Assembly (NCBI GenBank): GCA_964057225.1
Contig: OZ059898.1
Coordinates: forward strand, 6,200,001-6,264,000
Source of the DNA: Auanema rhodensis
Taxonomy: Eukaryota; Animalia; Nematoda
DNA: 64,000 bases
Direction: 5' to 3'
The notes beneath the pieces were generated by a model. The model did not search any database, was not told the origin of the DNA, and saw nothing but the letters and a program-made list of their open reading frames with translations. The position numbers were made by a program, and so were the translations under genes. How positions within the stretch are numbered: position 1 is the first letter of the stretch; each line of letters begins with the position of its first letter. Below are positions 1 to 26,234 of the stretch, piece by piece.

Positions 1-3000
1 CATTCTATCCAAAACAGTGACTTTTACTTCAACTGTTGTACTCTGTGGAGGCGTGCCTAAATTATTACAAAATTCAATTCGACACAAATATCATGATATC
101 GTACCTTGATCCGTTGCTGTTACGGTGAATTGATAAACATCCGTTGTGATCAATTGAGAAGCTACAGTAATCTGTCCATTCTGCTTGTCCAGCTTGAAAA
201 TAGTTGGAATGTTCGAACTAGAATAGGTGATGACAGCATTATCACCTATAAGACTTCATATTTAACAAAAAATTGAAATTAGAATAAAACTACCATAATC
301 ATCATCGACTGCTTTTACAGTTAAAATAGAGTGGTCAATTTTCATGTTTGTGCTGGTGACTACGTCGTATGGTTGTGACAAAAAGCGTGGAACACAATCA
401 TTTTCATCAAGAACTTTTATATCAACTACACATTGGGTATACACAGGAGGGATCGAATGAGCATGAACCTAAATCAATTATTCAATTTAACTAAACAAAA
501 AATTACCCACCTGAACCAATATATGTACTGAACTTATAATTTCGCGATCAAGTGGAGGCCCTGCCAACATAATGTGTCCTGTTCTCGAATTAATAGCGAA
601 TAAGTCGTTATGATTCAAAATAGTGTATGTTAACGGAGCATCGTTAGGTGCATTATCCACATAAATATAAGCAACACTCTGCATTGTAGCAAACACTCTA
701 TTCTCGGGTAGACTCAGAGACAAATTGTTGGAAAAGCAACGGAACGAATCATCAGTTGGTACAGCTTCAATTTGAACATTCAGTGTACAGGAATCAGAAA
801 ACATGCCATCTGTCACTACCAGTTCAGTCTAAAATGTAATTTTTAGAGTGAAATACTTTAAAATCATTGATAATGACCGTGAAACTCTTTTCATATATTG
901 TGTGAACCGCGGGCCCTGTTTTTATTATGCCTGTATACTTTTCAACATCAAAGAATTTCGTAAGCGCTTGATCCTAAAGTTCATAATTTGCTTTAAAAAT
1001 TATAAAAGATTTTGCAACCTTGAGGAAATATCGGAGTTTTCCAGTGGTATCTTTGTCTGTTGCAGTGATTTGATTTAAAATAACATTGCTAGTTGTGGGA
1101 AGTTTCAACACCAGATCATAGGATTTAGCTGAGAACTCAGGTTTCTCATCATTAGCATCCAACACTTTTATATTAATTTCAGCTGGTAAAGCGGATGTAC
1201 GCATTGGATGACCCATATCACTAAAATACAACATTCGATTCAATTAAGTATTTAATGGCATACCTGGCTTGGACGAAAAATGTTATTTCCTTGGTAACTT
1301 CAAAGTCAATCGAAGATCGAGATTTAACAGCTCCCGTTGCAAAATCGACAGTGAAAAACTCTTCTTGGTTCAATGTACGGTAGGTGACAAGTCCACTTGG
1401 CCCATAATCTTTATCACTAGCTGTAATTACCAAAGGTGATCCATCCTTTGATACAACTGCTGTTCCAGCAGGGCTATTTTCAATTATAAACCCTTCGTAA
1501 ACTAACTGACGGAAGATCGGTGCATATTTGTTGGTATTTACCAAGCGAGCAGATATCTGAAAACGGTTTCTCTAAGAAATAAAAAACGTATCATTCAAAA
1601 ACCTTAGATGTCGCAGTTCCTGAGGAATGTTCGTATAATATGAAGCATTCTAAAACTTTAGCTCTTTCCTGTGAAAACCACTTTCTGCTGGATATAACAC
1701 CAGTTATCTATAAATAAAAAAAGTTCGAAGAAGCGTCTATATTGCTTACGGGATGTATAGTGAAGTGAGGACAAGGCTTTTGTAAACGATATTTTCCACA
1801 ACACCGAGATGTTGAAACACTAACAAGAGGACTTCCAATGAAAATATCGTCTTTGATGGAAAGTTGGTAAACAGATCTGAAACATAGAAAATAACAGTAC
1901 GTTCCTCATGGTTGATAATACTTCATAAATTTAACAGAATTCTTGGTATTTCCATCAACTTCAACTCTCAATAGAGCGGAGTCAGTTAAACCCAACCGAT
2001 CACCATCAGTAGCTCTGATTGTTAAAACAGATTCGCGCAGTTCATCAGCTAATGGCTTAGCAATTCGAACAATGCCTGATATTTCACCCAATGAGAATAA
2101 TTGCTCTTCATTGCCACTGATAATTGCATAACGAAGTGATTTTTTTTGAGTAACATCTCTATCATGAGCAAGCAATTTTTGAACAACGTATCCAGTAGGC
2201 GCACTAAAAGGTAATTTCAATTATTTAGTAAACAAGTATCTCATACTTGAATGGTATTCTAGCTACAAATTCTCTTTGTAAAAATCGAGGTGGATTATCA
2301 TTGGCATCCAATAGATCTACAGAAAGAAATGCGAATCCGGTAGAAGAACCTCTTTGAGCAGCAACTATCATACGGATCTTTTTAGTGACTTCAAAATCCA
2401 AAGGTTCAACAACGACCAGATTTCCACTACTAAATATGATTTTAAGTCGGTAAACTTCTTCAAATATAAACTTACTTTGGTTCAATCCTAAATTTGTTCA
2501 ACATAAACTCATCCTCGCACGAATATAGAGAATAAGTTATTTTAGAATCGCCTCTAGCATTCAGAACTTTCAAATTATATACAGTAGAGCCAACTGGTGT
2601 TTTTTCTGATATTTCAGTGTGATATGTTAGAGCAGAAAATTTGGGCCGTTCAACTGTATTTCTATTTATATTAACGGTAATCTGGAAAAAAGAGCATAAG
2701 CACCAAAAGCAACAAAAAAAAAACCTTTGAAGAAATACTAGAGTCACCATCGGACACGGTTAAAGTTAATGTGATTGATGTCGCACCAATAGGTAGCACA
2801 GAAATTGGCTTCGCCAGTATAAGAGCACCCGTATTTGTTTCCGTGTCAGAACGCATAGAAAAAACTTCTTCCACATTCCCTTGTTCGATGGACCACCAAA
2901 GAATTTCAGAATCATCATCAGATGCTTCTAAGGTTATGATAGTAACGCCAACCTGAAAGATGAAGAAGCAAAACTAATTATAAATTTTCAGTGAAAGCAT

Positions 3001-6000
3001 ACTTGATCAGAATCAGTTGCAGTTACATTAGGAAAACTGTTTTTGAAAGCTGGCTTCTTATTTTTCCTTTTCTTTGGTTGGGTATTACCGGTTCCAGTGA
3101 TAACTACTCTTGTTTGAGCTAGTTGAGCTGGTAATCCTCGATCTGTAGCATGAACGCTAATGTGAAATACCTGACAATTATTTCGTAAAGTAGATATAAG
3201 AGAAAATAGCAACCTCATCATTTCCTAAAGGTGTATTTGTGGAAATATATCCATGTTCATTTATGGAAAAACGAGGATCTCCTTGAGTAATATTGTAATA
3301 CAGCTGCCCATTAGCACCAGAATCAGCATCATATGCAAATATTCTAAGTACAATATAGTATCAAATGATTAAGTTAATTGAAATACCTGCACAGAGCGCC
3401 ACTTTCACCAGCTTTGACATTGTAATGATGTATTGCTTGTGAAAACATAGGAGGGTTATCATTTACATCCTCAATACTGATCACAACTAAAACCGTAGAA
3501 CAAAGCTGTGGTTCACCATTATCACAAATAGATACTGACAATTCATGCTCGCTTTGCGTTTCTCTATCCAACTTCCGAGAACCCGATGTTGTTATATAAC
3601 CTATATACTACTATAGTATTGAAACATAATTAACTATACCAGTAACAGGGTCAATACGGAAGAAGCTTTGAGGATCTCCCTTCACGATAGAATAAGCTAG
3701 AGAACTTTGCGAACCTGGAAGCTCATCTCCGTCAGATGCCTCTAGTTTTACAACAACGGTATTCTTAAAGTATTGATATTTGTGTGAAAAAATTAAAATT
3801 ACTACTTGTGGTGAGTTCTCCTTTACACTGGCGAAAAAAATTGGACTATTGGGAAAAGGTCTGTGATCATTCTTATCCAGAATTCTTACAAATACGTGAA
3901 CTACAGCATATCGTATATTTCTTGTAGCATGAGACACTTCTATCGTAAGCCAATAACTCGACTGTTCTTCTCTGTCAAAAACAACCAAAGTTCTTATAGT
4001 CCCTGAAAAATTTGCTTAAAACCCTGACTATAGATAAAGAATAATTTCAGTAGAATTTGTTTCTATTTCAATCCAAGTTCATACAAATCCTCTTGGTGGG
4101 GTCGAAAATCGCTAGAGGCTAATACTTGATAGGCAATATGAGTCACAATTATTCACATATTATTGACAGATATTTGCATTTACATGTTCCCTAAGGAGAA
4201 CCAAAGCAGATGTTGAAGACAGAGGGATTGACATATAAGAACCTATGAAAACCTTCACTCACCATCGTTCACAGAGAAATATCCTAATCCGTTCCCGTCA
4301 ATAGGAGAAAACAGGTATTCCTTGTTGACTTTGCTATGCTGCATCAGAGGTTGTAGCGTAAAAACTTCAGTTCCGATAGGCATGTTTTCTTAACATTTAC
4401 TGTTCAAGCACACCAAATTCTTTAACTTACCATAAACACTAGCTTCATGAGCAACATCCTCAAATAATGGCCCAGAAGTATTTTCAAAAACCTCAATAAG
4501 GTTTACAACAAAGTGACAAGTGGTGCTCAATATTGATTCCCCATTATCAGATATCTACATATTTCTTGTTAGAATGAATTTAGATTCAATATTAAGTTTA
4601 CCTCAATTGAAATATTATATACAGACTTGGCCCGATAATCTAAAGGATTCTTCGAGTTAACAAAAACACAACCGGTTATAGGATCCAGAAAAAAGGGTAA
4701 GTTATTTCCCTCATTCTCTATTGAATATCGTAACCTAGCATTTATACCAATATCACGATCAACAGCTGATAAACACCCTATTAAAGCAGTGTCAGGAAAA
4801 TCTTCTGATATGGAGACCTAAAGAATATAATATTATTAAACTGATCCAAATTGAAACTTCAAACATACAGTTGTGACAGGCTCTAGACACACGGGTGGAT
4901 TATCATTAATATCTTCAACTACGATAGTTAAATTAATAAAAGAAAACAATTGGGGAGTTCCATGGTCAAAAGCAACCACAGTATATCTGAATAAGAACAA
5001 AAATTGAATACATAACAAAAGTTCATCAAACCTCAAAATATCTTGAAATTCCCTATCTAATGGCTTAGAAATAGTTATTTCTCCACTCTCTTCATTAATT
5101 TGCACATAACTCTCGTTTTGTGTCACCAAACGATATCCTACTCTGTAATGAATAGGAAATTAAAATTCTTATCCCTGTTTCAATCTTCAAACCTTCCTGC
5201 CTCTCCGTGGTCTTGATCGGTAGCGCTAACAATGAGTATCTTTTTGCCCACAACACTACTTTCTTGCACTTGAGTTCGATACCATGGCTGTAAGAAGCTT
5301 ATTATGTTGACACCATAAGCCGGGCAACTAATGCACAAGAAATAATATAGTCTTAATAGCAATCTGCAGATGAATATCTCTCGGTGTACGAGATGCTTTT
5401 CAATGTGCAGTTAAAGCTATTGCATCCTCTCAGCGTATTCCATTAGCTAATTATATATCATGCTTGCTCTTATTTGTAGGGTCAGGATATAACCAGCCCT
5501 ATGCCTAACAGAGTCAAATTTCAAGCTCCCCAAGAGGTGCTATGAAAACATATTGAATTTTGATTCATTTTAAGACTAAATATTGAGATTTGAGACCCGC
5601 GAAACAAAAGAAACCATCCATGCAAGAAATGCTTAAGAAATAATAACATACCTGGTCAAATTGAGGAATATAATTGTTGACGTCTTTGATTACTATACGG
5701 ATAGTGCCTGTTGTGTTTTTTCTAGGAATGCCGAGGTCAGAGGCCAGAATAGATAGTTCATGCTCGATGCTTTCGGAGCCTTAATTATAAATATACAAAA
5801 TTTTGCATTACAGAATAACTACCAGGGGATAAAAGAGATTGTAGATTGCGAGCAATAGTCACATCCCCATTGTTTCTATCAACCATAAAATATTCATCTA
5901 CAGAAGAATACTGCACAATCCCGTTGTAACCAGAATCACCATCTATTGCTTTTACTTTTGTAACCACCTGGAAAACGATTACATTAATCTTTTCAAGGAC

Positions 6001-8791
6001 TTGTCATATGGATCTATCTGTATGTCTTATGAGGAGAGTAAATTCATTACACTTGCATAACTGCTCACCAATCGTCATCTTTGAGTTAACCATTAAAAGC
6101 TCATACTCTAGCTCTGTATCTTTGTTCATGTATTCAGTTATTCATAAAGAAGACGATCGATGAGCGCACTTGACCCCGTGCTTTGTGGCACTCTTTCTCG
6201 ACAAAGGCACATAATGCTATTTTACAAAGCTGTCATCTGCTTACTCCTACTGTTCCCCCAATAATTAATTTCATGTAAGAAGAGTATTATTATGCTCAAA
6301 TGATAGATCTAGAAAATTAGCAAAACGTACAGTTCCTAGTTTCGCATCCTCAAAAATGGACAATGTCTTTGGAAGATTAGCGAACGAAGGAGATAATAAG
6401 TTAGCAGATGGTATTCCGAAAACAGGTCTTGGTTTACCAGGAACCTGAATTAAAACATGTAAACAATTACTTAATAACATTGTTCCTCACTTTAGTTCCA
6501 TTCCTATAGAAAATGAGGTTTAAAGATGACGACCGTGGTAACGGGTGACCCCCATCTACAGCCCAAAGAGTGGCTTTCCACACATTTTCATCTTTGGGTA
6601 AACTTCGAATCAGATTAATCTGTACATATAAATATGCGAAAAGCAAACTATTTTTAAACATACTTCACCGGTTGAATGATTGACATCGAAAGGGATCGGT
6701 TTTCCAGACAAAAGCTTATAAGCCAACTTTCCGTTCTCGTTGCTATCATGATCGATTGCATCAATCTATAAAATAAAGACAAGGGAATATTTTTAGTTAA
6801 TAAGACAATTCTACCTTCAATAGCACAGAATTTAATTTGGCACGCTCTGGTACAGCTATTGGACCCTGTCGTCCCCACTTAACAGCAAATACAGGGAAAT
6901 GATCGTTGGAATCCAGGACATTAGCTTCCACTTGAATAGATATGGGTTTCAGTTCAACATGCCCGAAGAGCTGAACACAACATGTTCGATTATGCTTACA
7001 AAGCAAACAAACTTTTGCCTCTACATTGAAGTGGTAGAATTTTTTAGATTCAAAATCTAATTGTTGAACTACACGAATAGCTCCGGTTAATTTATCGATA
7101 TGAAAAGGTAACGAAGTATCATTTCCAGATTGAATTTCAAATCTGTAAAAAGGATTAAAAAAATTCAAAATAAAACAGAAAAATGTACCTAACTAAGCTT
7201 TGGTCTTCAACAAAAAGGGTATTCACATATACTTTACCTATAATATAGTTTAACGGAACATCTTCTTCAACTTCAAAAAGCAATTTAGACTCCGAGAAGG
7301 ATATATTATATTGTCGAGCAACATCGATCTAATAGGAAAATTTCATATTTATATAACTATTAACATAAACATACGATAATAGTCGCAGTTGTATTGCTTT
7401 CTCTTGAAAAACCATTCCCTACACTAAGTGTAACATTAGTTCCTTCCTTTATAGCATGTCCCTTATTCTGAAACAACAAAGTAAACAAAACTAATCATGA
7501 AATACTAAACCGTATATAAGGTCCACACATCCCCACTCTTATTGACATGAAACCAATGCCTCAGATCATCATCTACCAAAGTTACATCAGAATGATTTGT
7601 TCCGCCTTCAACCCTGATAAAACCAGCGATCTAAAGGGGAAGATTAAACGATATTTCAATCTTACATTGGTTAAGTTGAAAAAAAAAATAAACCTGTTCG
7701 ACATAAATTTTATGAGAAAGCACGGTCCTCTTTTCTATTAATAACTTAGGATTTACTTTCTTCTTTTCCGTAACAATTATCTTAATGATATTGTTATTTA
7801 TTAACATAGGTATTGAAAAAAACCTGGACATTTGATGTCCAACTAGGCTGTTTCTGCTCTTCATCATAATTAAAAATACGAGATGCTCGATCTTCTGCTC
7901 TAACTTGGAAACTATATGTTCCTGCCTGAAGTTGTCTCAAAGATCGAACCCAACCTGCACGATAAAGACGTATATATTCAAATTCAACAAGTAAAACCTG
8001 ATATTGGATCAACAGTAAAATCAGAAGAGCGATTTACTAAAGAATAATAAATTTCTCCATTTATTCCTATATCAGCGTCAGACGCTTCCACTTTCAAAAT
8101 TTCAGTGAACGGTGGGACCTAAAGTAAAAAATGACTTTAAATCCATGTGCAAATTTGCAACATCATCAGTAACAGCTCCTTCATACTGATCGGTAAGTAA
8201 TGTAAACATTGGGCTCGCATCATTACGATCCAGCACTCTCAAGCGCACTATAGCAGTTGTTTCAACATTACCGCTGTTCTTTTGTTTACTAGTAGCCTTA
8301 ACCACCAGCTGATATAAATCCTAAACAGACTCATTACTTTATTAGAAATATAGAAAACCAGTTACCTTTAATTCTCTATTCAAAGGAGTATCATTCTTAT
8401 CTTTTTGCCTAATGCGCAAGAACACGAAATCACCCACTTGTTTAGAGTAAGCTTTAAACTGGTGGTTCTTATCCCCCTATTAAACAAAAATAAAAAAATA
8501 TAAGCATATAGAAATCAAACTTCAACTATTTTAAATTTAACAACTGAGTTGGAATGAGGCAGGGGGACTCCCATTTTAACGGTATCATCGCTTGAAGCAA
8601 ATTGATTCCCCCTTTAAGAAAAATAATAATAAAACAAAACTAAATTAATCAAACCTAGCATTTTCTTCTAAAGATATATTATACACAGGAGCAGTAAATG
8701 AGAAAAGAATTTCATTAGACCTGCTAGCTGAACACTGATTTCCATACAAAAATATAAAAAGAATAAACAGCAGAAATTCAAGTCTCCTCAT
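1..8791 (-). CDS. cdh-4: Fat-like giant cadherin, 5' portion (multi-exon; continues past the window start)
   Basis: ATG at 8791 starts a signal peptide (MRRLEFLLFILFIFLYGNQCSA). Many cadherin repeats follow, with DxNDNxP, LDRE/LDFE and AxDxD motifs, across dozens of short GT-AG introns. The number of tandem repeats points to Fat/CDH-4; orthology is by recognition. Confidence 0.85.
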
Positions 8792-13269: not shown

Positions 13270-16261
13270 ATGAGGTTCGAAGATATCATAATTCCTAGTG
13301 TAAGTAAAATAAATACCAGAACCTAATTGGATCCCATTATTAAAAAACTGGGCTCTATCGATTTTGGAGTGGCATGGGCGTAAGGGGGGAATGTTTTACG
13401 TATTGGCTACTTTCTTCTTGAGCTTTTAGCGTTTTCTGCCTATATTTCGATAAAAGCAATTCTAAATATCTTTGAATATTTATTTTATTTCAAAAACTTA
13501 TTGTAAATTGTTAATTTTATACCTGGATATGGTTAAAATTCACTTATAATACTTATAAGTGTATATAAATTGATGATAATACTTTATAATAAGCATAACA
13601 TTTATTAGCATAATGACTAAAAAGGTATACGTTGTTTATATTTTTTGTTTATTCTTCTTTACATTCATTATTTAGGTGGAAAAAGTTCAGTTGGTAGATT
13701 GTTTAAGTAATGATGCCAATGTTACTGGTTCTTTGCATATAACTCCTTCTCATATTATATTCCGTTCTGATAGCGGATCTAGAGAAATTTGGGCATGTTT
13801 AAATTTCTTAAACAATTTTTAGTTAGATTATTATAGATTTCTACTGGTTTGATTGGGCTAGTAGAAAGAGGCTCTATTTCAGTAGCAGGATGTGCCTTAA
13901 CTATACGTTGCAAGCACTTCAGGGTTATTAAATTAAACATTTTTATCTTACTCTATGCTTTAGGTAATTAATCTTCTTATTCCAAGAGACAAAGCATGCC
14001 AAGATCTCTATGAAACATTAAAAAAAATTTCGGAAGTTGGTATGTAACATTGTTGTTATTGAGTGACAATATGTTATTTTTATATATTATAGTAAATGTA
14101 AAAGACTTACCTGCTTTCGATATACGCCAACCTCAAGTTAATAGTACAGGGTGGTCTAGACTCGATTTTGGAATTGAATTCTCTAGACAAGGGATAAGTG
14201 AAGAATGGAACGAAACTGATATTAACGAGAATTATGCAGTAAGTCTATATTATTGACGAAGAATTTTAATTTGCATACTAGATCTGTGATACTTATCCAA
14301 ACCGTCTTTGGATTCCTACTTTGGCAACCAAGAATATTCTTGAAGGCTCGAGTAAATTTCGATCAAGAGGAAGACTTCCAGTTCTAACTTACTTTTATAA
14401 ATCGTCAGGATCAGCTTTATGCCGGTAGCATACTATATCAATGTTTAATATAGCATATTGTTTATAGGTGTGCTCAACCACTTGCCGGATTTTCTGCTAG
14501 ATGTCTAGAAGATGAGAAATTAATGAATTTAGTTGGGAAAGCCAATTTAACAAATAACAACATTTGCTTAGTTGATACACGACCTCTGGTATGTGTTTTT
14601 AGTCAATAATATATGCAGTATAACAAAGTTCAGATGAATTCTTTTGTCAACAAAGTCCAAGGAAAAGGTTACGAAGATGTAAGAAATTACAATAATATGC
14701 AATTCAAATCGTTTGATATTGAAAATATACATGTCATGAGAAATAGTCAGCAAAAGCTATTAGACGGTAATATCTAATTCTGACTCCACTCTAAGTTAAA
14801 TATTTCAGCATGTTCTTCATCCAGAACATTGACCGAATATTTGAAAGGAATTGAATCGTCTGGTTGGCTAAAACATCTTAAAGCTATAGTTGATTGTTCC
14901 ATGTTTATTGCTCAGTCAATGCAGAGAGGTAAATACATATCTTAGATTCATTCGTATTTATGAAACACTGTTTACAGGCATTTCTTGTGTTGTACATTGC
15001 TCTGATGGTTGGGATCGCACAGCTCAAACGGTAGCTATGGCTCAGATTCTGCTTGATCCATTTTTCCGTACTATCCATGGCTTTCAAGTATATAAATTTA
15101 GAATTTATGCTTATTATCACTTCACACCCTTTAGGTTTTGATAGAGAAGGATTGGCTTGCCTTTGGACATAAGTTTGATGATAGATGTGGTCACGTTGGC
15201 GCTTTAAACGATGAAGCACCAAAAGAAGTTTCACCAATATTCACTCAATTTTTGGATTGTGTGTATCAAATAATGACGCAAAGGCCGAGAGCTTTCCAGG
15301 TTTTATATATGGTTCAAACTTATATTATATGTAATATCTAGTTTAACGAGAGATACCTCATTGTCATACACGAACATGTATATTCGTGTCAATACGGAAC
15401 ATTTCTTGGAAATTGTGAAAGTGATAGAAAGGTTAACTTAGCAAAAGTTCAAGTCTATGTAACTTTTATATTTAGGATCTTGGATTATCTAAAAGAACTA
15501 ATTCGCTTTGGACTGAGCTTGATACTAGACAAGACGATTTCTTAAATCCTTTCTATGAGGTTTCCCTTTATTGCTCTATTGTTTGTATATTTTGTTTTTC
15601 AGCCTTTTTCATTCACTGAACTAACAGATTTAGATACACGACCAGCAAACTTTTCAGTTTGGTCCTCCTTATATAATAGATTCGACCTTGCTGCTCAACC
15701 TAGAGAATGTTTTGCTGATTCTGTTTTAAATTCGATGGAACATGTAGGTGTATTGGAAAGCCATATAGCTGCTTTACGAATGGTTTCTTATCTAAATTTG
15801 TTCAGACATAATTCCCGCTATTTCAGAGAATAGCTGAGCTTAAAGGTCTGGGAACATCAATGATAGATAGTGGACTTAGTAGTAGTGAAGGAGCCGATGA
15901 CAAAGTTATACTGGAGAGCCCGTCCTCTAGAGAAAGCTTTTTCTCTGAGTTAGAGTTTGAATTACCAGTTTGGAGAATATTTTTCATACATTATTAATGC
16001 ATTTTTTAAGGAAGAGAGTCTTACTCATAGAGCTGTGCGTTGGCAACGCCTCAATGACGTACATAATTGCAATTCAGACCGTTGCCGCTCAGAGTTTTCT
16101 TCTTTTGTGGAGCGAAAGATTCATTGCCATAGATGTGGAAAGGTAGAAAATAGAACTATAAGGCTGAATCAAAATTTAAAATTCAGATATTTTGCCGACG
16201 TTGTGTTCAAATAACTCCTGATAGTCGTGAAAGAGTATGCCAGATCTGTTTGAAATCATAA
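13270..16261 (+). CDS. mtm-6: Myotubularin-related PI3P phosphatase (MTMR6/7/8 class) with C-terminal FYVE-like domain
   Basis: Spliced N-terminus [10 protein letters not shown]|VEKVQLVD, catalytic motif [23 protein letters not shown]-terminal [16 protein letters not shown]...RVCQIC, stop TAA at 16259-16261. Confidence 0.93.
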
Positions 16262-16760
16262 CTGTGTGTAGGCTGTAATATGAATATGACGGGTTTACGA
16301 ACTTACATTCTTGAATCTTACTTAAATAATACTTTTGCTTGTGGGGTCGCTAACTTATAAAATTAGTTTTTACGTGTTTTTTTTCCAATTTTTTTACTTG
16401 TACGTTTAATTTTTATATTTCTTTGTATTACAATATTAACAATTTGCTTGCGGTCAAATATGTTTGATTCTGAAACATAAACTTAATTTATTTTTCTATG
16501 ATTATTATACATCTGCTTTTCACCGAATGTATCAGAATGAAAAATGGGGGACACTCAACAGTAATATGTACAGAATGTTTGGAAAAGTGATCATAAAAAT
16601 TTGGAAAAATGAAAGCAATAAAGGGATGGTGAGGATGAATGCGAAGAAGTGAGAACAAAGGAATTTATGTTTCTAATAAGAATCAATCCTGATATGTATG
16701 AAGTAGATCCTAGGTCGAGCCCATAAGCGACAGTGAAAATATTAAAACCTTATAATGACA

Positions 16761-19700
16761 TCAACTGGATCGAGCTGAGTTTAATATGTATAAATGATTT
16801 TTCGAATCAACTAGACGATCATCTATCTGTAAAAATTAAATATAATCATTGCTAAGTGAATGGCTCAGTTTGATTACTATTATATAACTATTACTTACGT
16901 CTTTAACATCTCTAACAATATTGATCAATTTATCTTTATAACCTAACCAAGCTCTGTATTCTTCATCAGTTAGTATGCGAACCTAAAAGAAATATTATTA
17001 TTTCGCAGGGTTGGAACATGAGAATAACATAATTAATTATAAGAATGTCTCATACCAGCGCATAATCCATATCCCGTTCTCGACGATCGTAGATGTTACG
17101 TAAAACATTAGCGTCCTTCAAACGTCGACGCAGATGCGTTTCTTCCAGCAGGGCATCGGACTACAAAGGTTTTAGATGAAAGGGAGAAGGTGAGTAGAAG
17201 GTAATAATGAGAAACAAAGAAAGAAAGGATAAGAAACAGTGAAACAGGAGAAAATAACGAAGACTACTCACCTGGTCTGATGTTGCCGTACGCAGATGGT
17301 TGACGACCTTCTCCATCTGATATGCTAATTTCGTTTCCATTCGCACCAGCTCGACATTGTTTTCCAAATAGCGTCGTAACTGAAAATATAAGAAATGCAT
17401 GATTTGAAAATTGGAAAACAGAAATTTTGTGATAATACTTGCCTTGTTAGCTAATATTGGATCTTTACGCTCAATGGCTGCCAGAATTCGTTTACCCAGC
17501 TGGTCGTTTATCTCACGTTCTTCTTCAATTTCCTCTTTCGTTTCTTTGAATGTAGTAATTCGTCGTGAAACTTGTGATATGGACTTAAAAAATAAAAATA
17601 TATATATATACGATAAAGAAATTTTAAAAATATTAAAAAAAATTGTAAATGAATATAACCTGCAATACCTCTTGACGACGTTCTTCCAATTTTTGCATTT
17701 CTTGACAATTATCATGCGGAATTTTTTCGTATGCTTCTTGTAGTGATATAAGTGATGGAGATCCTATTAAATTCGATAAGAAAGCAGACGACGAAGTATT
17801 CGGAAAGGAAGATAAAGAGGACAGAGAAGTTGAACTGAAACAAAAATAGCATTTATATGACTTGGTTAAATGGAAATTAATATTAATTAGGTAACCATAG
17901 AACTGTTAAGAAATATGATAAAAACGCTCACCGGTTTAAATGATCGACAAGAAGACCTTTAGGTTTTGCGGGAACAACAGGCTTTTCTTTCCGAATTGGA
18001 GGTAGGTCTTCTTTGGATGAAGATCGTTCATCTGCTGGCATTGGATGAACCTACATACGGAATAAGTACAATTTTATTGAAATAGTCAACTTGTTTGAAA
18101 TAACGTATCGATAAAATGTTTAACTTGTGTCTTGTTTTTCTTAGAAGGAAAGTGTGAAAAATGGGATTAAAACTCAAAAACGATCGATCATATAAGCCTC
18201 TGATAAGTCATGAACAAATAGAAAATGAAATATCGAGGAAATAGTATGAGAGCTTTATAAGTTTGAATAAAATGCTTACTTGAACCGTAGGTTTAGTATG
18301 ACATTGGGAAGATAACGTAGAAGAGCTGGAAGAAGTAGAACATGACATTTCTAGAGAACTCATAGAGGAAGAAATCGATGTTCGAAGTCTGAAAAAAAGT
18401 TGAACAAATGACAATACAATAGATGAAATAACCACATTCATGAAAATTTAATGTTTCATATAATGAATCAACAAATAACAATGTTTTCAATGGCAAGTTA
18501 GTATTCTCTCGTCATCGCTTTTCAAATTTTCACTTCTTGCATGAATAAGATAAGAGAACACAGCGAACTTCAATAATTTTTTTAAAAAGATAAATGTTTC
18601 TTGCAAAAAAAATTGGAAATGTGAAGGGAATATGTGATATATACCTGGGTTGTGGTGGCTGAATATCAGGAAGTATAGATTGGTAAGCTCCAGAATCTAT
18701 TAAAGATCTGTAGGTGGACTCGTCAGACTGCATGCACGGCACTGGGGAATTGAAAGATTCCGATGGAGATACAGATGTACTAGATGAAGGTGGATTGGTG
18801 ATAGGTCGAGATGCTCCACTAAAATACATATTAGTAAAAACGAACAGGAAACAACGTAAAGAAAGTAAAAGAATGACTGCAGATCATAAAAGGGAAGCCA
18901 CAATTTGTTTGACCATAGTCTGTTTGCTATTCAAGAATCTTAAACAACTAACTTCTCATCTCTTCGTTGACGGATTTTTCGTTTCGCTCCGGATGGACTG
19001 CGATGAAGCATGACAGGCAGTTCAGAGATGAACTGCGGACGGAACGTCTGGAAAATAGGAAATGAATCGAAAAACTTAAAAAATGCTCTCTAGTTAAAAT
19101 ATGCTAAATAAAACGAAATGTATGATACATTACTCAAGAATGTTTTAGGGTATTAAAGATTTAAAAGATAAAATAATAAAGCACTGATTTAGCTTTAGAT
19201 TTAATTTTTTTGAAAACAAAAGCTTAAAACGATGATGTTTCTACTCAATCAATACATCTTCGATATTATAAAAAACGTGAATTTAATTGAAGTTTTGTAC
19301 TAATTTTTAAAAATTTTAAAGTTTATATAATTTGAACTAAAGCAATTGTGGAATAGAATTATATTAAAATCCATATTTCCTGGACATACAAAGAATTTAT
19401 GATGGGAAAGATCAATGTTAATGACAGCATACCATGAAAGTGTTATCATGATTTTCATCAGCTATCAGGATAACCTAATAGAATATGACAAGCTGTAGCT
19501 TTTTAATAAATAGAAATAATCATAATAAAATAAAAGCTTATAACATTTTTATCGTGAAACCGAAAATTCGATTGAAAACAGGGTGGGTACCAGAAAAAAA
19601 TTTAAAAAATGAAATTTTCAGAGTGAACGAGATAACAAGGAAAATATTATTTCACATATTGAAAGAATGAGACAAAGAAGGTCTCCTGGTTTTGTGACTC

Positions 19701-21718
19701 ATCGTTTCCTTTGAACAGAGGACAACAGTCAGCAGCCGACGCAGTCATGTATACACTATCTAAGGCCAGTTCAATCGATAATGCTCCAGTAGATTAATAG
19801 CTGTTCGTATGTAAGAAAAGATACAAAAATGAAAGAAATAGTCAGGATCACAACGAGCATTTTGGCTAGGTTTTCAAAACTTGTCTTAATGTTTCACTGC
19901 AAGTTGCTGAAAAACGATTTTTTTTCATATGGACGGTTCCAGCACCGTAATGAGTTTCAAATCATGGGAAACGATAGACTTAGAGGAAATATTCGAAATG
20001 AATTCCAATTGAAATCTCTTGTTAAAATTTTGAAATAGGCACTCGTATGAAACGATCCGATTCCAAAAAAAGTTGAATATAGCTTCTTGCGTATATCTCT
20101 GTGTCAATTCAAATACCTATGGTGACAGAACATACACGGTCATCCTGCTGACCAGAAGAAGAGACAGGTCCCAACCCAAAAAAAAAGAAAATAGAAATGA
20201 AAGAGAATCATCTCCAATTGAATTCAAAAAAATTTTAAAAATCTAAATAAAGGGAAGACCAGAATAGAGTGCTAACAGGCTGATATGCTCAACTTATTTT
20301 GAACAAAAATATAATATTTTCATGAAAGTAATAAGTAGAATGACAGTACTACTATGAAATATATATTAATAATGAAACAAAGTATTTTCAAATAATGAAA
20401 AATATGAATATGCTGTGAGAGGTTGAACGTAATTAAGAGAAAGGCATAAGGGTAAAAGGGTGTCACCTAAACTAAAAGAAGGGAGAAATGAGGGAATTGA
20501 GAAAGGTTAGAGGTACGAGGTATACAAAGAGAGAGAGAAAGAGAGAGGAAAAGAGGGTATGAGAGAAAGAGAGTAGATGTAGATAGACAGGTGGAGATTG
20601 TTTGTGGCTGGGTGGATAGATGACCATGAACAACATTCCATACAGACGCAAATACATACATTACGAAGACCAAATTCAAAGCAGGAGAGGCAGAGAGAGG
20701 AAGAGAAAAGGACAACCTAGAAAACACGAGGCAAGGAATGAGAGAACGACTTAATTGCCCTCTTCTTTCTTACTGACCGAAAAGAGAAAATTCTCATCTA
20801 TCGAAGATGGTATGATTTGCACTTGCTTTATTCCATAACAGTCGGATTTTATCTCCGTACCTCGTTCCTCTTGGAATTTTTCGTTGATATTAATCGTCAA
20901 TACCATTTATAATATGATAATCTTCTAGTCTACTCCCACTGAAGTATGTTAACTTTAGAGATATTATAACAGAAATAATTAAAACGTAAAAATATGACCT
21001 TTAGTTCAGTGCTCTGTAGGGATATTAAAAAGGATGAACGTAATCCATACTACTTTTCTGTTTTGTTGAAACAATTTTCTAACTAAATTTGTCCAATTGT
21101 AAGTTTGTATTAAGTTTTAAGGTGCGGAACAAGTGCTATCCGATATACAATATGTAGAGGACATTGTAATGACTATGGGAATTGACCTTCAGAAGTTCAT
21201 AAAAAATCTATCAGAGACATGATAATAATAGTCAAGCTTTCTCTCCGAATGCTCATATTTTATAAAGCCTTCTTCGGTAAAAAAATATCTCCTGGCTAGG
21301 AAACCTAAGAGGCTCTGAAGCTAAGAAAAGATGGGGATGATAATGTTGGCAGATCAAATAGGAATATAAGATCGATAAGGACACTAGACAGACATATAGT
21401 TGAGTTTGAGGTCAAACCGTTCGCATCTTATGCATCAGTGCATGGCTGTTTGACTGAATATAACAGGATTAGGTTAATGAAAAATAAAAGAAATTCATAG
21501 AAATATTAGAAAAGAAGGTAAAAATTAATTAATGAATTAGATGAATGAGTTTTCAATAAATTGAAGAAAGAAGATACACCTGAACAAGAATTCGAAGAAC
21601 AATTGAAGCTTACCGAAGTAGTGGTCATCAACTGGTTGTAGAACTTCTGACTGGCAGCTCTATTGTATTTAGCAGATAGAAGAGTGTCAGTGTCATAGTC
21701 CATGTCAGATGAGGACAT
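16761..21718 (-). CDS. Shroom-like protein with C-terminal ASD2/SD2 coiled-coil domain
   Basis: In-frame exons run from ATG 21718 (after TTTTCAG) through Ser/Pro-rich exons (PVVPAKP) to EEREINDQLGKRILAAI...RRLKDANVLRNIYDRRERDMDYAL|VRILTDEEYRAW...IDDRL. This matches the ASD2 pattern (EDAKELKENLDRRER...LSEEQL). Stop TGA at 16761-16763. Confidence 0.75.
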
Positions 21719-23820
21719 GCTGAAAAAAATAGCTAATATCTCCAAAATAGTCTTGAGAAAACAGCGATGAAACTACTTTTTTTAATTTCCTGTTTAAATC
21801 AAAACAGGTAAGTAAAAGTCTCTACATGAAAAAATTATGAGCACTGAGGGCGTACACTCATAAACAAATAGAATAATAATCAGGAAACAATAACAACGTT
21901 ACATATATGATGTGTAATATCAATTTGTTAATAGTCTTGGATTATTACCACTACGGATGGATAAGAGAAAAGAATACACTGATTGTTTTAGATATTAACA
22001 AACCTTTTCGTTAGATATGACTATGACCTAATAAGATGTATTGATTTAATAATTATTATCAACGACAGATGCATATATAAATGTTTAAACGTTATTGGTA
22101 TTAAGGCCAAAAAAGGTTACAAAAGGATTATAGTGTCAGACAACAGACTAATTTTAGTGTGTTTCTCTATAAATAAGGATTATTTCATAAGTGACCAGTT
22201 GGTTTAAAAACTGTAAAAAAAAATTATGAAGCGTATTCTTAGCCTAAAATGGGAACATCAACACAAGATGAAAAATTTGGGGGAATATGAGGAGAAAAGA
22301 AGTCAAATTGAAGAATAAGAAAAGAAAAGATAACCAGTATAGCTACCGAAGTGACCGGCATAGCACATCATAAAGGAAGAGAGAGGAAAAATGAAATAAT
22401 GAGATGAAGTGAGTGGGTGAGAGAGACAGGGAGAGAGAAGGGAAAGAAGTGAAAGTAGGTGGAGGGAGATTGGAGAGAAAGAATAACAAGAGGAGATGGG
22501 TAGTAGGATGAAGCATTGTGTTATTGTGCTCCGATTCGTTATGCCCTCTTCTCTACTTTCGACTATGTACTGTTCGGTTACGAACTAGCAATACAGATAG
22601 AAATAACAAAAAATACAGAGTGAGATAAAGAGAGAGAGAACTAGGGAGAGCTAGATAGGTGGAACGAGAGTGAGTAATGAAGAGAGAGAAATGTATAGTG
22701 ACTATCTTGCTTTCCTTCATATACATCTTCTTGTCCTCTCTATCATTGGAAACTCTTTGTGTCTCAACCTAGTCAACATTCTCTCATTGCACATCGCCGG
22801 CTACAATATTTGCGGTCAGCTGAACGAACCGGACTCTTCTTTTCACAATTTATGCTGTTCAGCTCTTCGACTACCAGGAAACTGATGAATAAAAAGATTA
22901 TAGGCAATGGGTGGTTTTCTCAATGAACAATACACATCCGAGTGAACATTGGAGAATCTCGAAAACCGAAAATCATAATGAAGAAGCTCAATCTTTAAAA
23001 ACTTTTCTCAATGAATATGCCATGCTTATGCAACTATGAAAACGAAAAAAAAAGAATTCTACAAGAAAAAGAATGCACTGCCGCAACGTCTCAAAACACG
23101 GAAAAAAATGAGGTAATGATAGGGAATTCTCGAAAAACATATGTTCATTGAGAAGCAACCCATAAAATATTTTTCTTAATTGTTACATCTTATACGAAAC
23201 ATTGAAGTTAAAGTTGTTCTGGATCAGTAAGTATTTAACTACTTATTTGGTGAGATTATGGTTTCACGACTTCTATTAAGTAGGAAGGATTACAGTATAA
23301 ATTGTTTGAATCGTGTTCTCATTTTCATATTATTAGTTGTCCTTATCTCCTTTTTTTAATAATTTATTTTTTGAGCGATAATATTTTACTGAATGTATCT
23401 TCCATACAATAACAATAATTTCTGAGCTAAATATTAATAATTTTCTAATAATAATTACTCTATGTATTTGAATTCAATTTGGCTTAGTTTACGCGTTCGT
23501 CTACTTCCATTGACTTACTTGTTCGACTTAACCAGATTGCCATAGCACTCCCATCTGTTCCGCGCTCTAACTCTACCGCTCATCCAATACTAACGAGCTT
23601 TTCCAGTCAATAGCCATTAGCTGACTAGTAACCTTATTTACTTGTCCGCATTCATTTATTTTCTTACTTAAATAATAATTTATCACAAAATAATAATACT
23701 CATTAGTTTATGTATTACATGCTTTCTTTGCTTTGTTCTCCTATTCAATACATTGGTGCAATATAACACTAAGAATCAATACTAACTTGTTCCAGGGCGA
23801 CACTTATTGATGGGTTTGTA

Positions 23821-26234
23821 ATGCTTGCTATTAGATTATTTCAGCCAAAACTTTTATTTAAATCTTTTATTGCTAAAGCGAAACCTGTTTCATTTTCAAG
23901 TCAAAGGTGAGATAAAATTAATTATTCTGTTTACAAGCTCGTTAAGCAGAAGTACATTAGCTGTAACATTCGCAGCAACTACATATGGTTTCTTAAAAAC
24001 TAGAAAAGCATTCTGCAATAGCTCTAACAATCCGTGGCTACTTGTTCCAGTTGTATTTTTTTTTCTCATTTCAATATATTTATTCTTTGATATTTTAGGT
24101 TCCAAATATATCGGAGTCTCAAACATGTGCTCGATTTTTGTTTAGCTCCCCTGTACATATATTTCATCGTTTAATTGGAGTAGTGCGAATGTTTATGAGG
24201 TTTATTTCATTTCTCATTTATATTATTTTATTTTATTAAGATGTACAGCTTTGATTCTACTATATGCACCAGTCGTATTAACATATCCTCTTGCCATATT
24301 TGTGCCTGGAATTGATAATGTTTGGTGGTCTTTCTTACTCTTTGCATTACGGGTTTGCTTTTTTTGCTTTGTTCTCATATGCTTTAACTTTTAGACAAGT
24401 GGCCCAACATTTTTGAAGCTTGGTCAATGGGCTAGCACTAGGAGAGATATTTTTACAAAGGAGTTCTGTGATAGAGTAAAATTTTCGTTTTTTAAATTGA
24501 TAATAGTTTACTTTAGCTATCTGTTTTACATACTAAATCAAAAAAACAACGATTATTCCGAGAAAAAGAAAGAGTTTTTGATCAATTGTTTGGAAAGGGA
24601 TTCTTTAATAAACATGGCAAGCGTGTTATTACTCACGTTGAACCTTATTCAGTCGGATCAGGCTGTATTGCCCAAGTAAAAACTTATTTAAATAAAAAAC
24701 AAATTTCACGTATGGTTATAGGTTTTCAAAGCTACTATTGATTTAGAAGAATTAACTAAATGCACAGGAACAGAAATTCCTGAGTTGAAACATAAGAAGT
24801 TTGTAGATATAGCTATAAAGGTAGGTTCTATATTTCGAGTTTTATATATTATTCATGTGTTATATATTATTCAAAATTTGTATTTTTTTTTCAGGTTGCA
24901 GATCCGTCTACTGACTCTCTAATAGAATTAGATTTATCAATATTAAAAACTATTGCACGAACTACACAAATGGTTTGCTCTTATTATTTTTAACATCACA
25001 ATTCATAAACTATTTCAGTTAATGCCTTCATTAGAGTATGTTGATCCCGTTGGAGCATTGCAACAATTTGAAATGGTTCTAAGAAAGCAAGTTGATTTAA
25101 GAAATGAAGCAAAAGCTTTGATTGTTAGTCTAAGAATAATTTGCAAATAATTTTTACTATTTTTATAGAAATTCGCATCGAATTTTGATCATGAGAAAAC
25201 TGGTATTCGGTTTCCTGTTGTAATAGCTTATAATAAGGACATCATAGCTGAATCGTTTGAAGAAGGAATGTATATTAACCGATTGGTGGCCGAAGAAAGT
25301 GATCCTGGGGTTTTGAATTATAGCTATGATATATTAAGTTTATTGAATCTTTTAGTTGCAATCGAAACAATCTAATGCTGTTCGCCGTAGAATAGCTCAA
25401 CTAGGAGCTAGAGCTCTTTTAAAAATGATTTTTGTAGATAATTTTGTGCATGGAGATTTACATCCCGGTAATATTCTTATTAGGTATTTGTATTTATTTG
25501 AACATCTTGTATATATATATATATATATGTTTATAGGTTTAATGATCAAGAAGAAACTTTACCAGGAGTTCATATTGCTCCACCATCAGACAGTCCATTA
25601 AAGCGTTTGTTTGATTACTTGCGTAATACTGTTGGATGGCGTGCTGCTGCTAAAGTGAAGTTCACAGATTCGCCTTATGTTCAAGATGAGCCAACTCTAG
25701 TTCTATTAGATACAGGCAGGGATGAATTATGAATTACAGTAATATTATATTGATTTAGGAATTGCAATATCAGAGACGGAAGAAATGCTTCATAATTTAA
25801 AAACACTGTTTCGTGCTATCGTAGAAAAGAGGGTACAATTTATTAATTATATTTTCAATAATAATTGTTTATACACTTAAGGGCTACGAAGCAGGACATA
25901 TGCTATTAAGCAGGTCTCATAAGCAATCCTGTAAAGACCCAGATAGGTTTTGTAAAGAAGTTGAAGTTTTAGTAAACAAGGCTATGAGTGAACGTTCGTT
26001 AAGAAAGGTTTGTTATAAATTCAGATAAATAATAACAGTTTTTTATAGTTGAATATATCGGCTGTTTTATCAGAAATGTTTTCTATTGTGGCTGAACATA
26101 AAGTTGCTCTCGACGCCTCTTTCACAACGGTTATTCTTTCTGTTATGGTTCTAGAAGGATTTGGAAGATCATTGGATCCTGATCTAGATTTATTCCAGTG
26201 TGCTAGGCCTTATTTGCTCAATGTGATATTTTAA
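23821..26234 (+). CDS. AarF/UbiB (ABC1) atypical kinase, ADCK2-like, with mitochondrial-type presequence
   Basis: Motifs GPTFLKLGQWASTRRDIF, VGSGCIAQV, IAIKV, QVDLRNEA, NFVHGDLHPGNIL, LLDTG and VLEGFGRSLDPDLDL. Basic amphipathic N-terminus MLAIRLFQPKLLFKSF. Confidence 0.88.

Follow-up and report, generated by a model that had tools for sequence, protein, structure and literature searches.

Evidence for a minimal Shroom-family protein with an ASD2 domain in the nematode Auanema rhodensis

Epithelia of flies and vertebrates change their shape by means of a central module, the interaction of Shroom with Rho-kinase (Rock). Shroom proteins have a length of 850-2000 amino acids, and all members of the family have just one domain in common, ASD2 (also termed SD2). 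The vertebrate SHROOM1/APX and SHROOM4 are, reportedly following Hagens et al. 2006, family members without PDZ or ASD1, and each of them still has one N-terminal domain. Because ASD2 alone is shared by all members, a protein with only this domain can belong to the family. Analysis of Shroom mutants revealed that two patches of SD2 are required for Rock binding (PMC3364177). The more critical patch, SC3, is located at 1878-LKENLDRR-1885 of mouse Shroom3 and the SC3 mutant abolishes binding of Rock, whereas the other patch, SC2/HD1, comprises 1832-LLSLSGRLA-1840 including R1838 (PMC3364177). Helices B and C correspond to the segment of Shroom2 that binds ROCK1 (PMC10626209). According to a structural paper from 2013, Caenorhabditis elegans lacks a discernible Shroom homologue (PMC3857177). 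Here we analyzed a 64,000-nucleotide stretch of DNA from the nematode Auanema rhodensis (contig OZ059898.1, positions 6,200,001 to 6,264,000; G+C content 33%), called the window in the following, in which a first-pass annotation had described a compact Shroom-like gene. The best explanation for this gene is that it is orthologous to C. elegans B0353.1, is present in a single copy and encodes a minimal protein of the Shroom family.

The gene is located on the minus strand from position 21718 to 16761 and consists of 11 exons (Table 1). The in-frame join of these exons comprises 1272 bases corresponding to 423 codons, with the ATG at 21718-21716 and the stop codon at 16763-16761. The splice borders on the gene strand are GT..AG throughout, except for one GC..AG. 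The coiled-coil peptides quoted in the first-pass annotation turned out to be exact minus-strand translations of exons 7, 8, 9 and 10. Using the open frame over exon 7, intron 7 and exon 8 (17272-17583, minus strand) as a query, an exhaustive protein search identified P0001, a protein of 376 amino acids from Auanema sp. JU1783. The exons of the window are 81% identical to P0001 overall and 86% identical over exons 6-11. P0039, a 423-amino-acid isoform from the same species, matches ten collinear exon pieces in the genome. As all of these matches fall in the ASD2 locus, the gene is single copy. Since the exon matches are 81% identical, collinear and confined to one locus, P0001 and P0039 were used as stand-ins for the protein of the window in all full-length tests, and the window itself was searched exon by exon.

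Both orthologues match the Pfam model ASD2 (PF08687) with 42.6 bits (E 7.6e-11) over profile positions 64-287 of 289, clearly above the curated cut-off of 26.4 bits; in P0001 the match begins at residue 153. Matches of single exons to ASD2 or Shroom are weak. Exon 7 alone reached 14.6 bits (E 0.027, profile positions 120-157) with the Pfam model, and its sole match in the PDB was Drosophila Shroom (3THF). Exon 9 alone yielded a weak match to stathmin and nothing else in the PDB. Six-frame searches of the genome for ASD2 and for the Rho-binding domain of ROCK found no candidates and are uninformative, because a direct scan of exon 7 does give a score for ASD2. To compare the complete domain we used a family profile made from an alignment of 25 nematode orthologues (alignment A1). 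With this profile only three matches with E < 0.4 were obtained in the whole PDB, and all three are Shroom SD2 structures which are covered over nearly the full chain: 3THF (1.5e-13), 5F5P (2.5e-11) and 5F4Y (1e-10). The next match has an E-value of 0.45, and the SD2 matches are 12 orders of magnitude ahead of it.

An AlphaFold (AF2) model of P0001, built on the same alignment, contains four long helices A-D at residues 197-249, 251-287, 293-330 and 333-372, with predicted local distance difference test scores (pLDDT) above 90. Four such helices, forming two antiparallel coiled-coil segments, characterise the SD2 fold. Residues 1-168 are predicted to be disordered, with a pLDDT below 50 for most of them. 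A comparison of the model with the PDB using Foldseek revealed human Shroom2 SD2 for all of the top six hits (template modelling (TM) score by target 0.78-0.81, root-mean-square deviation 2.8-3.6 Å). After these hits the E-value jumps to at least 0.06 and the superposition is poor. The model thus predicts that about 180 residues at the C-terminus form a four-helix ASD2/SD2 domain. The SD2 domain that the first-pass annotation had placed in the last exons, and for which it had suggested the Pfam model as a check, is therefore backed by the Pfam score of the orthologues, by a profile that matches SD2 chains only and by a predicted fold with a TM score of about 0.8.

Homology to the SD2 domains of Drosophila (3THF) and human SHROOM2 (5F4Y, and 5F5P in complex with ROCK1) extends over the whole domain and includes the four-helix arrangement, but the identity is only 20-23%. 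Among the nematodes, conservation of the gene extends over Rhabditina and Spirurina. The two closest relatives, the unnamed and unstudied proteins CAI4228060.1 (376 amino acids) and CAI4228061.1 (423 amino acids) of Auanema sp. JU1783, derive from a different species and show the same exon order and the same two lengths as the models of the window. The orthologue in C. elegans, B0353.1 (isoforms of 387, 408 and 435 amino acids), has the same motifs and architecture, with an identity of about 40% between it and the Auanema orthologue; its 387-amino-acid isoform starts with MLHRSPSG like the short isoform described below. In Pfam scans no ASD2 match was detected for B0353.1 (P0014, P0034 and P0035) even at E 10, which probably explains the statement of 2013 that C. 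elegans has no homologue. The Auanema-like members (42.6 bits) and the filarial members (45.1 bits), Wuchereria included, are above the curated cut-off, and their sequences bridge the diverged B0353.1 to Shroom. As a family the gene is not new, because the UniProt/NCBI name of the orthologues from Necator, Ancylostoma, Haemonchus, many Caenorhabditis species, Pristionchus, Mesorhabditis and filariae is already "ASD2 domain-containing protein". B0353.1 is labelled "uncharacterized" and appears in the searchable literature only as a neighbour of gtf-2H5; no paper linking it to Shroom was found there. The first-pass annotation knew of no functionally characterised nematode Shroom. This holds insofar as the nematode branch is functionally unstudied in the searchable literature, yet the family, B0353.1 included, had already been annotated automatically as ASD2-containing. 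A further sequence of the family, the strongylid-like P0002 (413 amino acids, metaclust), carries the segment of helices A-C two to three times, probably owing to an error of assembly or of gene prediction.

A resemblance to ASD2 could also arise by chance in a generic coiled-coil protein that is not related to Shroom. The weak single-exon matches, the missing Pfam match of B0353.1 and the fact that only 10 of the 25 orthologues reach an E-value below 0.01 would be in line with such an origin. It is hard to reconcile with a profile that selects SD2 chains only, over their full length and by such a wide distance, with the specific fold match and with Auanema and filarial members that exceed the Pfam cut-off, and we regard it as very improbable. 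The assignment of the C-terminal domain as a true Shroom-family ASD2/SD2 domain is supported.

For the analysis of expression we used transcript-like contigs from four public RNA runs of one study. About 20% of the words sampled from the stretch were present in this study, which is approximately the share of exons in the stretch. In each run one spliced contig (1383-1484 nucleotides) omits every predicted intron between exons 2 and 11. Of the nine joints within this range, eight are listed at exactly the predicted bases in the four runs, with no sequence differences; the ninth joint (17583/17669), which adjoins a skipped repeat, is evident from adjacent positions of the records. The GC-AG intron at 17380-17442 (plus-strand ends CT..GC, donor GCAAGT) is spliced out in each of the four runs. 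The RNA depth is 0-3 in the introns versus 16-45 in the exons, and the stray intron contigs at a depth of 2-3 look like traces of unspliced precursor. One may ask whether the exons form one functional gene at all, or whether a mis-joined model or a pseudogene is present. Exon 1 without RNA cover is the one observation in favor of this possibility. Single spliced contigs from four runs that span exons 2-11 without differences from the genome, the open frame and the conservation across Rhabditina and Spirurina make it the least probable of all explanations considered here, with next to no weight.

In the region from 19094 to 21800, which includes exon 1, no RNA cover was found in the four runs, and all four contigs stop at the acceptor of exon 2 at position 19047. 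The contig of run X3 contains nine additional non-genomic letters beyond this acceptor. Their reverse complement, on the gene strand, is CCAAGTTTG, which together with the aligned AG at the acceptor makes up the 11 bases at the 3' end of SL1, the spliced leader of nematodes. Because the contig carries the end of SL1 at the acceptor, the mRNA is trans-spliced at exon 2. For this form of the mRNA the first ATG (19011-19009) implies a short isoform of 376 amino acids starting with MLHRSPSG. Exon 1 is 83% identical to residues 1-36 of P0039 and matches the N-termini of the orthologues from Necator (56% identical) and C. briggsae (66% identical) at the corresponding position. These identities are far above chance, and exon 1 is likely to be real despite the lack of RNA cover. 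We read this as two isoforms using one acceptor: one cis-spliced from exon 1 (423 amino acids), which is deduced from conservation, and one trans-spliced to SL1 (376 amino acids), which is seen in the RNA. The first-pass annotation had named RNA as a check on the joining of the exons. For exons 2-11 its gene model was reproduced by the junctions of all four runs, but the transcript found in the RNA begins with SL1 at exon 2 and not at exon 1. A GA/AG-rich stretch of low complexity in intron 1 (about 20460-20720) has no RNA cover.

The nematode protein differs from the Shrooms in its length of 376-423 amino acids, in the absence of both N-terminal domains and in the presence of nematode-specific linear motifs. 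In agreement with the first-pass annotation, Pfam scans detected neither PDZ nor ASD1 in any exon, in P0001 and P0039 or in the 25 orthologues. Within the nematodes, four short motifs of the N-terminal half are better conserved than the helices of ASD2 (mean top-residue frequency 0.80-0.87 versus 0.47-0.60). The first motif is the basic N-terminus at the start, MLHRSPSGAKRKIRQ; here the methionine of the short isoform and the next eight residues are nearly invariant in the 25 orthologues, and the MLHRSPSG start in exon 2 is followed by a basic KRKIRQRR cluster. The second motif is YRSLIDSGxYQSILPD. It contains DSGxxxS, which in our reading has the pattern of a phosphodegron. KPTVxVHPMP is the third motif. 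The fourth motif, KEKPxVPAKPK in exon 5, provides a PxxPxK sequence of the class II SH3 ligand type, and the residues K137, P138, V140, P141, K143 and P144 within this motif are invariant in the 25 orthologues. The Ser/Pro-rich region with a PxxPxKP motif, as described in the first-pass annotation, is thus present. Localisation and regulation are likely to be encoded in these N-terminal motifs.

A candidate L27 domain (PF02828) in exon 6 was also considered. Exon 6 alone matches this model with 26.4 bits (cut-off 22), but the orthologues reach only 19.4-19.7 bits and just one of the 25 has a match. The stretch is located inside the ASD2 match and is half Ser-rich, and instead of an L27-like fold the model shows no more than two short helices here (4 and 12 residues, pLDDT about 70). 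The L27 match was rejected, since it looks like a false positive on a Ser-rich stretch that is followed by a short helix.

To find out which part of the Rock-binding surface is retained, the domain was aligned with 5F5P and 3THF using hidden Markov models. SC3 is kept: LRNIYDRR of the window aligns with this patch, and L, R, R and R occupy the four positions that the SC3 mutant changes. Of these residues L312, R313 and R319 never vary among the 25 orthologues, and they make up three of the only four positions of ASD2 that are invariant. E271 in helix B (exon 8) is likewise invariant in the family. The invariant positions of ASD2 lie on helices B and C.

The second partner, an orthologue of ROCK/LET-502, was detected in the genome by a pattern search for kinase motifs at locus L003 (G000:C3:18482000-18491999, plus strand; about 2300-7170). 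The best match of its kinase exon is ROCK1 (4e-14), ahead of ROCK2, DMPK and MRCK. The Pfam model Rho_Binding found nothing in this locus. The candidate Shroom-binding region is split over three exons, and the coiled coil spliced across a GT..AG junction contains LRQQL, eight residues and LYEDE. This spacing is the same as in human ROCK1 (842-LQDQL-846 and 855-LYKTQ-859), and the leucine heptad positions and the tyrosine are kept. The same pattern search yielded a second GRGAFGEV kinase at L004 (G000:C8:10343000-10352999, plus strand), which looks like a kinase of the NDR/SAX-1 type.

The first-pass annotation had raised the idea of a LET-502/ROCK recruiter. We consider a minimal Shroom-family orthologue of B0353.1 with a ROCK-recruiting ASD2 domain to be a reasonable hypothesis, to which we assign a probability of about 45%. 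Several observations weigh against it. The Pfam and fold tests rest on orthologue sequence, and the sequence of the window itself was scored exon by exon. No actin-binding ASD1 or PDZ domain that would account for localisation of the protein was found. Unlike SC3, the patch SC2/HD1 is not kept; it aligns to ETKLAYQME, in which only two leucines are retained and the position of R1838 is occupied by Q. On the ROCK side, KTQ, which is needed in human ROCK1 for binding of Shroom, is replaced by the acidic EDE in L003. A search of the PDB with the three coiled-coil exons of L003 gave no match to the structures of the Shroom-binding domain of ROCK1, and in ROCK of C. elegans LYKTQ (855-859) is also not conserved (PMC3857177). 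In addition, the main function may reside in the N-terminal motifs.

Part of these findings would also be explained by a true ASD2 protein that has lost the binding of Rho-kinase in nematodes. Such a protein could have a different partner, for instance MRCK-1, a polarity scaffold or some other protein with a coiled coil. Alternatively, the domain could serve the conserved N-terminal motifs only for dimerisation or as a structural unit. The changed SC2/HD1 patch, the EDE of L003 together with the lost motif of C. elegans, and the stronger constraint on the N-terminal motifs than on the helices fit this explanation, and ASD2 is known to bind other partners, for example the WRAAR box of SCRIB through helices A and D (PMC10626209). 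However, the invariant residues of the domain are found on helices B and C at the very patch that is most critical for Rock binding, and ROCK of this genome retains the leucine positions, the tyrosine and their spacing. We regard the loss of binding as a real possibility, albeit at less than even odds. Shroom and ROCK each seem to keep one part of the interface and to change another; the picture is mixed and fits co-evolution of the two partners or loss of binding alike. More tentatively still, we propose that the stripped-down nematode Shroom might continue to recruit or activate LET-502/ROCK or MRCK-1 via an interface that has been rewired on both partners. This interface is possibly charge-swapped, with the change of KTQ to EDE in ROCK and basic residues gained on helix B of ASD2.

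If ROCK is recruited by this protein, the linear motifs would place or regulate it at the cell cortex or at junctions. The face of helices B and C, which keeps the L-R...R-R patch, would dock on a coiled coil in a kinase that activates myosin. This kinase would most likely be ROCK/LET-502, both sides of the interface having diverged, and the outcome would be a local actomyosin contraction.

Table 1. Positions in the window of the exons and other features of the ASD2 gene.
Feature	Position	Strand	Description
Exon 1	21614..21718	-	Alternative 5' coding exon of the long isoform (423 amino acids), likely real; frame continues into exon 2 via a GT..AG intron
Intron 1	19048..21613	-	2.6 kb; RNA depth zero; without a conserved open reading frame
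Exon 2	18953..19047	-	Acceptor 19047 doubles as SL1 trans-splice site; ATG of the short isoform at 19011-19009 (MLHRSPSG...)
Exon 3	18645..18818	-	Ser/Pro-rich, with invariant YRSLIDSGxYQSILPD; RNA joints 18818/18953 and 18388/18645
Exon 4	18280..18388	-	Ser-rich, with first half of KPTVxVHPMP; RNA joints, alignment
Exon 5	17932..18050	-	VHPMP and KEKPxVPAKPK motif (PxxPxK); RNA joints, alignment
Exon 6	17669..17834	-	ASD2 match: N-terminal, less structured part and start of helix A
Exon 7	17443..17583	-	ASD2 helix A; Pfam ASD2 E 0.027, PDB match 3THF
Exon 8	17272..17379	-	ASD2 helix B; METKLAYQM region aligns with the Shroom LLSL/SLSGRLA patch
Exon 9	17056..17160	-	ASD2 helix C; LRNIYDRR aligns with Rock-binding patch SC3 (LKENLDRR)
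Exon 10	16899..16982	-	First part of ASD2 helix D; RNA, profile alignment, AlphaFold model
Exon 11	16761..16826	-	End of helix D and stop codon 16763-16761
3' untranslated region	16455..16760	-	Approximate end; contigs extend 154-245 nucleotides past 16700

Downstream of the gene a convergent neighbour is located on the plus strand (13676-16211). It encodes a phosphatase related to myotubularin (Myotub-related E 1e-21) that carries a FYVE finger at its C-terminus (FYVE E 7e-7), and the distance from its 3' end to the 3' untranslated region of the ASD2 gene is no more than a few hundred bases. For the upstream neighbour (24395-25730, plus strand) an atypical kinase-like domain of the ABC1/ADCK type was detected (E 3e-8).

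A bona fide ASD2 protein that is conserved and expressed in nematodes stands against the published view of C. elegans as an organism without Shroom (PMC3857177). If the nematode ASD2 domain recruits LET-502/ROCK or MRCK-1, this would overturn the published absence of the Shroom-Rock module in C. elegans, and the protein would represent a missing upstream regulator of worm morphogenesis. In C. elegans, a genetic model, elongation, gastrulation and tube formation are the candidate processes in which B0353.1 might act together with LET-502 or MRCK-1.

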